In this document: positions 52,519 through 59,119 of the stretch, piece after piece
How the letters are laid out: every line of letters begins with the position of its first letter
Position numbering within the stretch: position 1 is the stretch's first letter
DNA from: Phaeosaccion multiseriatum
Taxonomy: Eukaryota; Protista; Ochrophyta, other classes
Assembly: GCA_965112735.1 (NCBI GenBank)
Contig: OZ218956.1
Coordinates: 2,852,001-2,916,000 of the forward strand
Length of the DNA: 64,000 nucleotides
Direction of reading: 5' to 3'
Made by a program: the position numbers and the translations under genes
Notes under the pieces: generated by a model
Database searches by the model: none
What the model was told of the DNA's origin: nothing
The model's input: only the letters and a program-made list of their open reading frames with translations

Positions 52519-54163
52519 TCAGTGCTGCTCCCTTGGAGAAGGCCCTGCCGCTCGGGCCCTGGTGAGCCAAGCCCATCTGGACGGCTCCGTGGGCAGTGCC
52601 AGTGCCGGAGGCTGCTGCTGCTGCTGCGATGACTCCAGCGGCCTCTCTCTACTGGCGACCGCTGGAGCCTTCTTCCTCCGAACGACCTTTGGCTGCTGCT
52701 GCTGCTGCTGCTCAAGGGTCTGGTTAAGCAAAGCGCTCGGTGGGGTGCTACTGCGCGCGGCCTGTGAATCTCCTCCTGCTGAAGTGCGTGATCGGCCCGT
52801 CGCTGCTCGTGTCCATGGTGCTGGTTGCGATACCAGCTTGTCGGGCCCATCCCCTGCTGCCCCTCTCCCCACCACTCCCCGTCCTTGCCGCGATCGGGTC
52901 GGCCCAGGCTGTGTCTGTGTCTCTGTATTGCCCTCCCCACTTCCCACAGTCACGGCCCCTGCCCGACTGTGGTCGGCCTCCAGCGTTGCCCGGTACGCTT
53001 CAGTGCTGGACTGTTTCGACTTGCCTTCCTTGAGGAGTCGTTCCTGCCGCTGCTCCCACCCCCGCTTGGCCATCCACTCCAGCAAGGGCTCTGGAAATCC
53101 TTGATAGCTCCAGTAGACAAAGGGCACCACAGCACAGGCCACGGCTCCCATCCAGCTCATCCACAGCACGTGCATCGCCTGCCGCCAGCGGAAGGCGCCA
53201 CCACCCTCGGCTCTTCCTTCCTCACCCGCTGAATATCCATCCTTCCCTGCGCTATATGCACCACCCCCTTTACCACCCCCCCCCCCAGCAGCAAAAGCAG
53301 CAGCAGTAGCGGCGGCGTTCATATGTGCCCTGTGTGAATGTGTTGCGCTCGACATTGCCACGCTGCGCAGACCCGCTGCCGACCTGGCTACTGCCTCCTC
53401 CGATGACGGTCTGCGAGAGAGACAAAGCGATGGGGTGCGAGAAGAGAAGCAGATGAGCAAGCATACACAGGAATGAGTGGCGGACCGTGGGTGCGTTCTC
53501 TTTAATCTTGTCACGAGCGTGCAAAGCCTGGGGGTCGCAGTCTCCAATGGCCGCCGCCTCTGTCTCTCCAGTCACCGCACCTTTCCATCTTTCGCTGGTC
53601 TCGCCACCGCTTTGTGGCGCTCGCCGCGGCCACCTTGGACGCTCCGGGCCTCGTACCGACCTCCAGAGCGGCGGTTCCCGGCATCCTCCGAGGCACTGCC
53701 ACTTCCGATACTTTGTCCCAGTCTGTGGCCGACTCGGAGAGCAGGCGCCGCCGCTGCTCGCCAGGTGACTGCTTTCGAGGGGGGGCATTGCGACTGCTGC
53801 TGCTGCTGCTGCCGCTGCTGCTCCTGGAGGTTCTCCCATCCCTTGTCTGCTGCTGCTGGCGATGCTCAGCTCTGTTGACAAGGCAGGGCGAACAAGGTAA
53901 ACAGTGAGCAGATCGTGAGCAGGGGATGAGGGGACAAAACAACAGCCACGGCGTATTTCTTTTGGCACCTCATCTCCCTTCTCCTAAACCGACCTCTGGC
54001 TCGACGTCGCGCTGGTCGAGTGTGCCTGTGACGGCCTCCATACCACCCCTTTCCCGCTATCACTATCGCTGCTAATGTTCCGAGTCCTCGTCCTCGCCCC
54101 AGTCGTATTCCAGCAGCGTCTGGGTCGAGCAGCTACTCTACTGACGGCCACCCTCAGCGCCAT
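52519..54163 (-). CDS. Hypothetical mitochondrion-targeted single-pass membrane protein (left member of the inverted pair)
   Basis: Presequence MALRVAVSRVAARPRRCWN; two GT-AG introns mirrored in the right copy; TM segment VLWMSWMGAVACAVVPFVYW followed by a charged C-terminus. Confidence 0.6.
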
Positions 54164-55210
54164 TGGAAAGAGCTTCTTTCTTTCTTCTCTGTGTGACCAA
54201 GTGGGACTTATTTTCCCTGCTTTACTCCGTAACCTCTCCCTCGACAAGCATAGGGGAGCAATTTAAGGAAAGCAGAAAATGGGCTCCCAACCACACCCAG
54301 ATCATTTTTTTCAAAATTCCAAATTCCACTTTTGATCCACTTTTCCACTTTTCCACCTTTCCCCCCCTCCCCTACTGGAGGAAAAAATGGCGCTGAGGGT
54401 GGCCGTCAGTAGAGTAGCTGCTCGGCCCAGACGCTGCTGGAATACGACTGGGGCGAGGACGAGGACTCGGAACATTAGCAGCGAAAATGATGGCGGGAAA
54501 GGGGTGGTATGGAGGCCGTCACAGGCACACTCGACCAGCGCGACGTCGAGCCGGAGGTCGGTTCGGGAGAAGGGAGATGAGGCGCCAAAAGAAAGACGCC
54601 GTGACTGGTATTTTGTCCCCTCATCCCCTGCTCACGATCCGCTCACTGTTTTGCCTTGTTCGCCCTGCCTTGTCAACAGAGCTGAGCATCGCCACCAGCA
54701 GCAGCAGAGAGGGGATGGGAGAACCGCCAGCAGCAGCAGCAGCGGCAGCAGCAGCAGCAGCAGCCGCAGCAGCAGCAGTCGCAATGCCCCCTCTAGAAAG
54801 CAGTCACCTAGCGAGCAGCGGCGGCGCCTGCTCTCCGAGTCGGCCACAGACTGGGACAAAGTATCGGAAGTGGCAGTGCCTCGGAGGATGCCGGGAACCG
54901 CCGCTCTGGAGGTCGGTACGAGGCCCGGAGCGTCCAAGGTGGCCGCGGCGAGCGCCACAAAGCGGTGGCGAGACCAGCGAAAGATGGAAAGGTGCGGTGA
55001 CTGGAGAGACAGAGGCGGCGGCCATTGGAGACTGCGACCCCCAGGCTTTGCACGCCCATTAAAGAGGACTCCCACTCATTCCTGTGTATGCTCTCTCATC
55101 TGCTTCTCTTCTCGCACCCCATCGCTTTGTCTCTCTCGCAGGCCGTCATCGAAGGAGGCAGTAGCCAGGTCGGCAGCGGGTCTGCGCAGCGTGGCAATGT
55201 CCAGTGCAAC
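53341..55210. repeat. Large inverted repeat: arms ~53341-54163 and ~54387-55210, ~223-bp spacer
   Basis: The arms are near-identical reverse complements, including both introns; they differ by scattered substitutions and small indels. Confidence 0.95.
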
Positions 55211-56075
55211 AGGCCTCTCCAGACACCTCGATCCCGGGGGGGAAGGCGGTAGAGTATGCAGCGGTAGCAGCAGCAGCACTAGTGGGAGTGGGTTTGGGGC
55301 GGCGGGGCCCGCGGATACATCTTCTGGGCTGAGGAACGGAGCCAAGGTGTTGACATGTGGATTGCTTGGTGTGTTGTGCTACTGGACTTTGGCAAATACC
55401 TCCCCAGTGAAGGCCTCTGATAGGTCCGATCAAAGGGGCGGCGGCGGTGGTGATGATATTGTTAAAGTGGGAGGCTTGCGCCGTCGAGCGAGGGACAGCA
55501 GCGAGACACCAGCATGCATACTCTCGAGTGGAGCTGGGAAGCTGGGGGGTGGAGAGCGGGCAGGAAGAGAGGCTATGAGAGAGGCAGATATGATGTCATT
55601 CGTGGTTGAGGACGGGGATAGAAGACGAGCGAACGCAGCACCACCAGCAGCAGCAGCAGCAGGAGCAGCAGCAGCAGCAGCAGCGGAAGAAACAGAAGAA
55701 GCAGGTAAAAGGGCAGCAGCAGCAAAAATCGCAGCAGAAGCGTCAGCACGAAGCGTCGCCGCACCGGCAGCAACACAAGTAGCAGCTAAAAGGGCAGCAA
55801 CAGACTTAGCAGCTAAACGAGAAGCAACAGAAGTAGCAGCTAAAGGAGCAGCAACAGAAGTAGCAGCGAAGAGAGCAGGAGCAGCGTCAGCACAGAGAGC
55901 CGCAGCATCGGTAGCAACAGAAGCGGCAAAAACAGAAGCAGCAGCAGCGGCAACACTGTTGGAGCGGCAGCTAGAGGCGACAGCGAAGAGCGCGGCGAGC
56001 AAGAGGAAAGCCCAGGAGGAGGCAGACATGCAACAAATGCAGCCGCTGTGGCTGCAGAGGCCACGGCGGGGCTAA
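54387..56075 (+). CDS. Chimeric paralog: duplicated N-terminal half fused to a different TM segment and an Ala/Lys/Glu-rich tail (possibly non-functional)
   Basis: Same N-terminus as the left gene; introns 54557-54679 and 54992-55141. It diverges after VAMSSAT into GAKVLTCGLLGVLCYWTL and AAKxAATEV repeats. Confidence 0.5.
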   Translation: MALRVAVSRVAARPRRCWNTTGARTRTRNISSENDGGKGVVWRPSQAHSTSATSSRRSVREKGDEAPKERRRDWYFVPSSPAHDPLTVLPCSPCLVNRAEHRHQQQQRGDGRTASSSSSGSSSSSSRSSSSRNAPSRKQSPSEQRRRLLSESATDWDKVSEVAVPRRMPGTAALEVGTRPGASKVAAASATKRWRDQRKMERCGDWRDRGGGHWRLRPPGFARPLKRTPTHSCVCSLICFSSRTPSLCLSRRPSSKEAVARSAAGLRSVAMSSATGLSRHLDPGGEGGRVCSGSSSSTSGSGFGAAGPADTSSGLRNGAKVLTCGLLGVLCYWTLANTSPVKASDRSDQRGGGGGDDIVKVGGLRRRARDSSETPACILSSGAGKLGGGERAGREAMREADMMSFVVEDGDRRRANAAPPAAAAAGAAAAAAAEETEEAGKRAAAAKIAAEASARSVAAPAATQVAAKRAATDLAAKREATEVAAKGAATEVAAKRAGAASAQRAAASVATEAAKTEAAAAATLLERQLEATAKSAASKRKAQEEADMQQMQPLWLQRPRRG

Positions 56076-56403
56076 CTGTATAATGAGAATCAAGAGGAGC
56101 CGGCTAAATCTATCCAATGCTGGGCTTGCCGCCTTGACAACAGGCAGGGAGATATCTCCCATAGGATGAATGACTGCCCTCATGGCTACAGTGAAGAGCA
56201 CAAGAAGAAGGCAGTAGAAAAGTTTCGCTCCAGAAGGCGTGCGAGGAAGAGGGGCGGTGGCAGGCATGGCAGGGTCCAGGCGCCTACCCTTCCTCCTCTG
56301 GCACCCGTGGGGGCAGATGGTAAGAGATTTGCCGAGGTGAAGGTACCTCAGAGTGAGTCGGCGGCTGAGGATGTCCTCGCCCTTGTGTCGATTCAGCCTG
56401 ACC

Positions 56404-56551
56404 ACCGTGTCGATAAAGGTATGCCAATTCTTCTCCATCTGATGAGCTGCTGGGACGTTCTCCTTGGAGTGCCCTCGCTCATGTACGCCAAAGATAACGT
56501 TCCAGCAGATTATAAGATGGAGAAGAATTGGCATACCTTTATCGACACGGT
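56404..56551 (+). ncRNA. Long fold-back hairpin; candidate pre-miRNA or hairpin RNA
   Basis: 56404-56440 is the exact reverse complement of 56515-56551 (37 bp). The stem continues without gaps for 32 more positions (24 Watson-Crick, 3 G-U, 5 mismatches) to a 10-nt loop at 56473-56482. Confidence 0.55.
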
Positions 56552-57487
56552 TGCTTGCGCTCATTGCTAGTCGGAAAGAACCTGCTCAGCCAGTCGTACC
56601 ACAGTCATACGGGCACGCTCAGTCGGCGAGGAGAGACCCGCGGCCCTGTCAAGCCCACGCCCTCACGCCCTCACGCCCCTGTATACACAGACCTGAGCAC
56701 GCTCTGCTCTGCTGTGAGCATTGGAGGCTTGGCGAATCGACCCGTACCCAAGGCCTGTGTACCAGGACTTGGCGTCAAAGAAGGCCCTGCCTACGCTCTA
56801 CCGTGCTCTCCTCTCCGCTGATGCGCTGCTCTCTCTGTCTCATCCGTCTGTCTCATCTGTCTGTCTGACTGGCAGCCGCTGCAAGGGAGTCATTTGCTCC
56901 CTCGTCCCGCCTTTGGACCAGTAGCACGCTTCTCCCTGGCATATACTCTGATGCTGCTGCTGCTGCCATTGCGCAGCCAGTCCGACCGACGCGTCAAAGC
57001 GGGGGCAGATGCGGCGTGGCGAGGCGAGGCAGTCCACACAAACAGACGCTCCTACCCGCGGCGCTCATTGGCGTGCTGAGTGAGGGCCGAGGCACTCATA
57101 CTGCCCTTGGACTGGCTCGCAAGTGCGCTGCCCTCGTAGGAAGAAGCCATCTCCGGCGGCAGACTTCCTTTTACCCAGTCCAGCACCAGCTCCGAACATA
57201 CGTGTGTGCGTGTGTGTGCGTGTGTGTGTGTGTGCACGCCTGGCCTCTCACACTTAGCTTCTCATGGACACGGCACAGCCAGCCGTCAAAAGGCCTCCAT
57301 CTCTATGTTGCTCCTTCCAGGGCCAAGAAGCGGCACTCACTCATCCTCCAGCTCAGGCATATGGAAAGGAGCATTGAGGAAATTGTTCGTTCCTGGGTGC
57401 TCTCACTGTCTGCTGCAGCTGGCTTTCGCTCCCCGCGAGGACACTTGGAGGGTGGTGCTTGCCGGGCCCCACATCGCTGCACTGCAC

Positions 57488-58870
57488 TCATTGAAGAGCC
57501 TTCTCTCCCTCACCGCTGCTTCTTGTGTCTTGCACGTCGCCGTTAATACCCGCCGCCGCTTCTTGCTCCTCCTGAGCCTGCCGATATATCATCCAGTCTT
57601 CCCTACTCAGCTCCAGCGACGGCAGAACGAATATTCTTGAATCCTCCTCACTCTCTTGCTGCCCCTGAGCGGCTCGGCCGTTGGGAAAGACTCCGTGCTC
57701 CTCTACGTATCCCGCCAGCTCCATCGTGCTCCTCCACGCCTGCACCATACTGCTGTCATCGTCTTGAAGCTTCTCGGCCAAGGCCCTCGCCTTTCCTTCA
57801 ATCTCCCATCGCCGCGTAGCGTTTCGAATGAGGTCACCGGCGATTCGGGGCATGTCCTCCAGCTCAGCAAAGACGACAGCTCCCTCGTACAGCTTTTCTA
57901 GCTCGGGGTCATCCCCTCTCTCACTGATCACCACCTTGCCCATCGAGAGGAGGTAGTGAAGCCGATGGACTTCGAGTTGCAAGTAGTCACGGAAAGCGTG
58001 AATGTTCAGCACGACCTTGCTCAAAGTAACCACTTCGTCTCTTCCTGAGCCGAATATGTTGAGGTGTCTGTATATCGTCTCATAGCCGTGCTGTTTGTAC
58101 GTCGCCTCCATGCCCTGGAAGAAGTCGTCCCGGCGCTCGGTATTTGCACCATACCACAGCACATCGATCACCCGAAGCTCATCAGGCACTGGCGCGGACA
58201 CATTGGCGAACGCGTGTGGAATACCAAGGTACGCGGAGTCCGTGGGCATTCCTATATCGAACGCGTAAAGACCCGCATCCCGCTCCAGCTGGACCGCCAC
58301 GGGGCTGTAGTCCCAAATGGCAAGCGCGTCTCTCATTGTTTTTTGGTAGAATGCCTGAGAGAACCAGTTACTCATCGTTTGCTCCATCTGAATCAGGACA
58401 TACTTGAAACGCAGTGGCATCACCGGAAAATCGTGGTTACAGCCCAGGAGTATAAACAGGATGGATGGATCGAGCATGTCTGCTTCCCATAGGAAGTAGT
58501 CCTCCAAGATGGAGACGTGCGCCGTGACACCTTGGGAGGCAAGCACCCTTTGGATCCCGTAAGAAGTTTCCTCAAAGCAAACGCCTTTAAAGAGGATGTA
58601 GACTCTCTCAAAGCCTCCTGGAAGCTGGTGGGAAAGGTCTGCGCCTAAGCCTCCCAGTAGCTCCTGCTGGCCATCCCCTCCCTCCTCTTCAGAACACTGC
58701 TCGTGAAGTTGCTTAGGTCTCGGCTGCTCCTCCTCCGTCTCTGCCGATGGCCTCGACAAGGCAGTCACGAGAAGCTTCGCACCCTCCACTGCCACTTCGG
58801 ACGAAGGAGGTGGTGTTCCCAAAGCCTTCGATGCAGCTGCCAGCAGTAGCATCAATTGGGATGAACGCAT
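57488..58870 (-). CDS. Intronless, signal-peptide-bearing GT-B glycosyltransferase-like protein
   Basis: Signal peptide MRSSQLMLLLAAASKALG. Motifs YVLIQMEQ, IWDYS, IDVLWYG..ERR, IFG..RD....SKVVLNIH, LE.HRL.YLLS.GK.VISE resemble Glyco_trans_1_2/CgeB-like GT-B proteins. Confidence 0.7.
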   Translation of the reverse strand: MRSSQLMLLLAAASKALGTPPPSSEVAVEGAKLLVTALSRPSAETEEEQPRPKQLHEQCSEEEGGDGQQELLGGLGADLSHQLPGGFERVYILFKGVCFEETSYGIQRVLASQGVTAHVSILEDYFLWEADMLDPSILFILLGCNHDFPVMPLRFKYVLIQMEQTMSNWFSQAFYQKTMRDALAIWDYSPVAVQLERDAGLYAFDIGMPTDSAYLGIPHAFANVSAPVPDELRVIDVLWYGANTERRDDFFQGMEATYKQHGYETIYRHLNIFGSGRDEVVTLSKVVLNIHAFRDYLQLEVHRLHYLLSMGKVVISERGDDPELEKLYEGAVVFAELEDMPRIAGDLIRNATRRWEIEGKARALAEKLQDDDSSMVQAWRSTMELAGYVEEHGVFPNGRAAQGQQESEEDSRIFVLPSLELSREDWMIYRQAQEEQEAAAGINGDVQDTRSSGEGEKALQ

Positions 58871-59119
58871 CTTTGGCCTCGTAGGCTCGGCTATGTCGCA
58901 CATCCCGTGATTTCCAACGAAAAGATCGACATCGCACGCTCCCAGAGCTGACACGAACGCTTCCAAGAAGGTTCGTGAGGCTTAATAGCGCGTGTGAGGC
59001 GTGTGATTTGGCCGGTGATCGGCCGGTAGCTGGAAGTTCGTGTGTTGGTGTTCTAGACAAATCACAATTGGCATTTTTCCCTTTTCTTTCTTGGCTCATA
59101 GATAGCCAAACGCCCAAAG

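Follow-up and report, generated by a model that had tools for sequence, protein, structure and literature searches.

Template switching can produce a perfect hairpin in a single event, and it also corrects and expands imperfect inverted repeats (PMC10710096, PMC13100816). Such a switch has expanded an inverted repeat in a yeast promoter (PMC13100816), and hairpins formed in this way can become miRNA genes, as in the births of miRNAs in primates (PMC10710096). At induced breaks in yeast, inverted insertions of ~5-34 bp templated by fold-back have been recovered, in which polymerase delta extends one end and the other end is joined; they occur alongside templated insertions from elsewhere (PMC11724301). 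Breaks can also capture Ty1 cDNA, in pieces of 140 bp to 5.6 kb with microhomology at the junctions (PMC1976456). The miRNA fold-backs of the brown alga Ectocarpus have a mean length of 170 nt and are found mostly in transcribed introns; three of the four criteria applied to miRNAs depend on small-RNA reads, namely that both miRNA and miRNA* have reads, that these are offset by 2 nt at the 3' side and that their 5' ends are precise (PMC4513859).

The window analyzed here is the 64-kb stretch C7:2852001-2916000 of a 67-Mb algal genome in 22 contigs. At positions 56404-56551 it contains a 148-nt fold-back, which pair counting and folding resolve into 69 paired positions closed by a 10-nt loop (56473-56482). 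A repeat finder gave 90% complementarity between the arms 56404-56470 and 56485-56551. Counted pair by pair from the outside in, stem positions 1-37 are Watson-Crick throughout and form a perfect outer stem (left half 56404-56440, right half 56515-56551). The 74 nt separating the two halves span an inner imperfect inverted repeat (56441-56514) with arms of 32 positions, where stem positions 38-69 comprise 24 Watson-Crick pairs, three G-T, one C-A and four other mismatches. The bases flanking the fold-back (56403 and 56552) are unpaired, so that the stem has an abrupt outer end. A sequence-only reading of this locus had proposed a 69-position fold-back with a 37-bp perfect stem, 24 of 32 Watson-Crick pairs in the remainder and a 10-nt loop, and had taken it for a candidate miRNA or hairpin-RNA precursor; the pair count reproduced this architecture in full.

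The same reading had expected a single stem on folding, and this was obtained for the + strand RNA, with a free energy of -112.2 kcal/mol compared with -52 ± 4 in 200 shuffles (z -14.4). The - strand RNA folds at -106.1 kcal/mol (z -12.3) and the single-stranded DNA at -62.8 kcal/mol (z -17.3), and the stability of the hairpin is far outside chance expectation. Taken alone as single-stranded DNA, the inner repeat 56441-56514 has a folding energy of -16.3 kcal/mol on the + strand and -15.9 kcal/mol on the - strand (z -4.4 and -4.0, respectively), and no second repeat of this quality was found in the 64-kb window. Outside low-complexity sequence, the window holds just one other fold-back, at 53341-55211.

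Mismatches are distributed very unevenly along the stem. None of the 37 outer positions is mismatched, compared with eight of the 32 inner positions (38, 41, 43, 51, 57, 60, 65 and 68), a difference with p = 0.0013 under a uniform spread. The confinement of all mismatches to the loop-proximal half, noted before, therefore holds for eight of eight, and the clustering is at odds with uniform decay of one inverted duplication. A coding origin of the mismatches was also rejected, as their positions follow no single codon phase. The earlier proposal that the basal stem is either under selection or recently homogenised can be narrowed to its second part: recent re-copying is favored, because of the sharp switch in the mismatch pattern and the rearrangement junction at the end of the stem (see below). 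At seven of the eight differences between the arms (56441-56514), the left arm has G/C where the reverse-complemented right arm has A/T (two-sided p = 0.07), a skew that has no account in the snap-back model described below.

On its left side, the hairpin adjoins a piece of a retrotransposon. Positions 56094-56412 (+ strand) are a 319-bp internal gag fragment that is 97.5% identical to C9:2018262-2018580 and 95.9% identical to C14:1536462-1536772, within two loci that have more than 4 kb in common. The C14 element carries direct repeats of ~250 bp (LTRs) that start with TG and are 93% identical, a purine-rich tract preceding the 3' repeat, and a downstream ORF with integrase zinc-binding, integrase core and chromo domains, features by which it is classified here as a Ty3/gypsy chromovirus-type LTR retrotransposon. 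The gag fragment spans a Cys/His knuckle-like motif of the upstream gag-like ORF, for which a Pfam search returned no match. Both ends of the fragment are breakpoints, since the full copies extend past it on both sides and continue the gag sequence for hundreds of bases.

The right-hand breakpoint falls inside the hairpin. Gag homology ends at 56407-56412 and the fold-back begins at 56404, so that the two edges coincide within 4-9 nt and the first 4-9 nt of the left outer arm still match gag. In the overlap (56404-56412) eight of nine bases are gag-matching and at the same time form the outermost stem pairs, which would fit either a microhomology or a template boundary. The gag fragment contains, 22 nt upstream, an 8-mer identical to one in this overlap, and the region around the junction shows an abundance of short homologies to the stem end. 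The sequence to the right of the hairpin (56552-57100) matches only itself in the genome, contains short ORFs only and is apparently non-coding. The hairpin thus marks a rearrangement junction, because the gag breakpoint lies within its first 9 nt and its right flank is unique.

Past the first 9 nt of the arm, nothing in the retrotransposon, in its LTRs or in the rest of the genome corresponds to it. Derivation of the arm from the neighboring retrotransposon was discarded after a sensitive BLAST against the 20 kb surrounding each full copy returned nothing, and the LTR ends are different. The hairpin is single-copy, its sole match in the 67-Mb genome being itself: a 26-mer and a 24-mer covering 56408-56446 hit only the two hairpin arms when searched on both strands of the whole genome at up to three mismatches. 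An exact 23-mer of the arm was not found in public metagenome and viral contigs. No known structured RNA family matched either, in a search of 55000-58000 with Rfam covariance models at E <= 1. Within 15 nt on either side of every hairpin boundary there is no direct repeat of at least 4 nt, except for a self-complementary TCGA internal to the stem. A MITE or fold-back transposon, an origin that could be checked by copy count and target-site duplications, is ruled out by the single copy and the absence of a duplication; for the MITE type with TCG...CGA ends and a 6-bp duplication, the 6-nt flanks proved to be inverted rather than direct repeats.

We propose that the hairpin is probably a snap-back (template-switch) scar, formed at a junction where retrotransposon DNA was captured as well. 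In this scheme, the inner repeat 56441-56514 is an older quasi-palindrome, which would fold back in single-stranded DNA, either at a resected double-strand-break end or on a nascent strand during replication, and act as the primer stem. Its paired 3' end would then extend along its own strand and, by copying 37 nt, create the perfect outer stem at once. The end of the outer stem would be joined through the short patch of microhomology to the 319-bp gag fragment, which would serve as filler DNA. A perfect outer stem over an imperfect inner one is the pattern that snap-back synthesis predicts, because the outer part would be newly synthesized from a primer stem formed by the inner one. The stability of the inner repeat as a single-stranded DNA hairpin on either strand also counts in favor of snap-back. 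The extension of 37 nt is a little above the typical length of the yeast events, and a pre-existing repeat with 24 of 32 positions paired is itself rare, with an estimated few per genome by chance.

We infer two possible versions of the event, which differ in the arm that would be new. In a break-repair version, the left outer arm is the new one: a break would have occurred beside the old repeat, the 3' tail would have folded back and copied 37 nt, and the copied end would then have been joined to retrotransposon DNA at a place where eight of nine bases agree. This version accounts for the stem ending at the junction, and it leaves to chance (about 0.02) the four further matching bases that follow the first four. 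In a replication version, the right outer arm is new: the gag fragment would have been present first, and in a later template switch the right arm would have been copied from the left side with its 4-9 gag-derived bases. This one accounts for the gag-like bases and leaves the coinciding boundaries to chance (about 0.1-0.2). The snap-back core of the proposal is common to the two versions. Arm polarity is therefore ambiguous, the gag-like bases of the left arm suggesting that the right arm was copied and the coincidence of stem end and junction suggesting that the left arm was synthesized.

More than one fold-back event has rearranged this locus, as the second fold-back in the window shows. That fold-back (53341-55211), 1.2 kb upstream of the hairpin, is an inverted duplication of ~820 bp with a 221-nt spacer and arms that are 91-98% identical; it is a head-to-head pair of one 5' gene half that has no other copy in the genome. 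On contig C9, a 1462-bp inverted duplication with 100% identical arms (C9:2016153-2017614 and C9:2020340-2021801) disrupts the C9 retrotransposon copy and is a very recent fold-back-type rearrangement. Both count for reading the hairpin as a scar.

The hairpin lies between a + strand open frame (54387-56570) and a convergent 492-aa ORF (57491-58966, - strand). Apart from one TAA at 56073-56075, the former is open throughout and links an Ala/Gln-rich ORF to the gag fragment and the hairpin; it could be a chimeric pseudogene or a coincidence, an open frame through the palindrome having a roughly 10% likelihood by accident. For the 492-aa ORF no Pfam family was detected and a word search produced no homologue, and it is an orphan or fast-evolving gene. 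Exact look-up of five ORFs gave no match.

The other reading with a functional outcome is that of a young hairpin-RNA or proto-miRNA gene, which would be transcribed, diced by RNase III and loaded by the single Argonaute, with its basal stem under selection. The great stability of the hairpin on both strands is consistent with it, as are a length of 148 nt, which lies within the brown-algal and plant fold-back range (PMC4513859), and its presence as a single-copy sequence that is not a MITE. Every 21-mer within the outer 37 bp is completely paired, the property considered in the precursor-pairing criterion (PMC4513859), and miRNA genes are known to arise from template-switch hairpins (PMC10710096). 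Part of the required machinery is encoded in the genome, which has one Argonaute locus (C13:416749-420865), its only locus with PAZ and Piwi domains, and three loci with RNase III domains (C1:4947333, C2:3563452 and C4:3820038). However, a search for a second PAZ locus found none, and no PAZ-carrying Dicer was detected in the genome. The arm search for a source or target gene was likewise negative: no site outside the hairpin matches 56408-56446 on either strand at up to three mismatches, which leaves no plant-like target or founder gene, and the DNA- and protein-level matches are to the hairpin itself only. The model of an inverted duplication of a target gene, on which the precursor proposal had drawn, consequently does not apply, because no founder or target gene has the arm sequence. 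The suggested bias of G-U pairs to the + strand is present in number, since the three G-T pairs become G-U in the + strand RNA and the one C-A becomes G-U in the - strand RNA, but it amounts to only 6 kcal/mol (-112 versus -106) and is indecisive. The location at a rearrangement junction, moreover, can be explained without function, and we regard a selected small-RNA gene as unlikely.

Transcription across the hairpin is conceivable from its position, for example as read-through out of the upstream duplicated 5' gene half or as part of the convergent gene's 3' region. A transcript of this kind would contain a 69-bp double-stranded RNA stem that RNase III could dice, and the hairpin would then be at most raw material for a small-RNA locus. 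An origin as a scar is compatible with later use as an RNA gene. The more specific idea of a newborn small-RNA locus, in which the duplicated 5' gene half, 2 kb upstream, would drive transcription of a 37-bp double-stranded stem made by snap-back and Argonaute would load the products, appears very doubtful.

A third explanation connects the hairpin to small palindromes that are found elsewhere in the genome, 92-94 nt long and ending in TGTT...AACA. One mobile family consists of 92-nt near-perfect palindromes with TGTTA...TAACA ends, present at L032:5211-5302 (C14:1541210-1541301) and at least 40 other loci, often in arrays near contig ends. A 5-bp duplication (CCCCT) borders the C14:1541210-1541301 copy, and the family has paralogous empty sites, for example C14:2733295-2733401. 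These palindromes look like miniature elements composed of two inverted LTR termini. The C14 retrotransposon copy contains a ~295-nt insertion at C14:1535962-1536269 (the L030/L032 boundary) that is missing from the C9 copy. In it, a 94-nt TGTT...AACA palindrome is accompanied by sequence with a tRNA-like T-arm motif and by 22 nt that partly repeat the start of the palindrome. A third palindromic family of about 92 nt with TTGTTAGAAGTCG... ends forms arrays spaced about 250 nt (L021:1895-2761; L025:432-1402, the same as L029).

The hairpin might accordingly be a diverged single-copy relative of these LTR-end mini-elements, inserted by a retrotransposon integrase. Its stem starts with TGT...ACA 4 nt inside the edge, and over the first ~20 nt it agrees with the end of the multi-copy family at 16 of 19 positions and at an identical offset (score 21). 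Of 500 shuffles one scored as high, and of 1720 window segments none did; the family is also truly mobile, as the 5-bp duplication and empty-site paralogues attest. The similarity is nevertheless confined to about 20 nt, the palindrome extends 4 nt past TGT/ACA, and the length of 140-148 nt compares with 92-94 nt for the mini-elements. Moreover, no target-site duplication is present at any hairpin boundary, the flanks being CACCG and CGGTT, and a second copy of the hairpin is absent from the genome even at three mismatches. We judge insertion as a mini-element to be quite improbable, while an older palindrome descended from an LTR-end insertion is possible on the sequence similarity. Finally, fold-back chimeras that join both strands in one read do occur in long-read data, but an assembly or sequencing artefact of this type is very unlikely for a hairpin of just 148 nt that lies 2.9 Mb inside a chromosome-scale contig, away from the contig ends, whose arms differ at eight positions in a structured pattern and which has a unique right flank and, to the left, a repeat fragment that aligns well.

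Read as a snap-back scar, the hairpin would be a clean natural example, from a wild algal genome, of two repair signatures known from yeast in adjacent positions, snap-back inverted synthesis and the capture of retrotransposon filler, and its mismatch pattern would mark the start point of the new synthesis. By itself, it would be one more fold-back scar and is an ordinary proto-hairpin candidate. If its transcript were diced, the locus would document, outside animals, how template switching gives birth to a hairpin-RNA gene. If a newborn locus were indeed present, this stramenopile microalga, whose genome seems unusually prone to fold-back scars, would have in them a steady supply of new hairpin-RNA genes. 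A question bigger than this single locus is what makes fold-backs and palindromic LTR-end elements so numerous in the genome.

Among the systems compared, the palindromic LTR-end mini-elements (e.g. C14:1541210-1541301) share with the hairpin a near-perfect palindrome, TGT...ACA near the ends and a similar terminal ~20 nt. The hairpin differs in being unique, in exceeding their length of 92-94 nt and in having no duplication, whereas they occur in many copies, with 5-bp target-site duplications at their flanks. The Ectocarpus miRNA loci resemble it in having a long fold-back (mean 170 nt, compared with 148 nt here) of genomic-hairpin origin, with most of the arm unrelated to transposons or protein-coding genes. 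In contrast to those loci, which are mostly in transcribed introns, the hairpin is located at a rearrangement junction between convergent ORFs.

Break-repair insertions and Ty1 capture in yeast have these features in common with the hairpin: a short inverted duplication at the junction, retrotransposon filler of a few hundred bases, and microhomology. The yeast events were obtained in the laboratory at induced breaks, whereas the hairpin is a fixed natural algal allele; the priming stem proposed here would be an unusually long, pre-existing imperfect repeat, compared with the few bases of microhomology used in yeast. Inverted repeats produced by template switching (Ripley-type quasi-palindrome correction) were compared as well. 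Their described cases differ from the hairpin in that its event is read from one genome, its 37 nt are at the long end of reported events, and it adjoins a captured retrotransposon fragment. Both present a perfect reverse-complement copy beside its template with a short spacer, and both combine an imperfect inner repeat with a perfect outer extension, a possible origin in one event and the size of a miRNA precursor.
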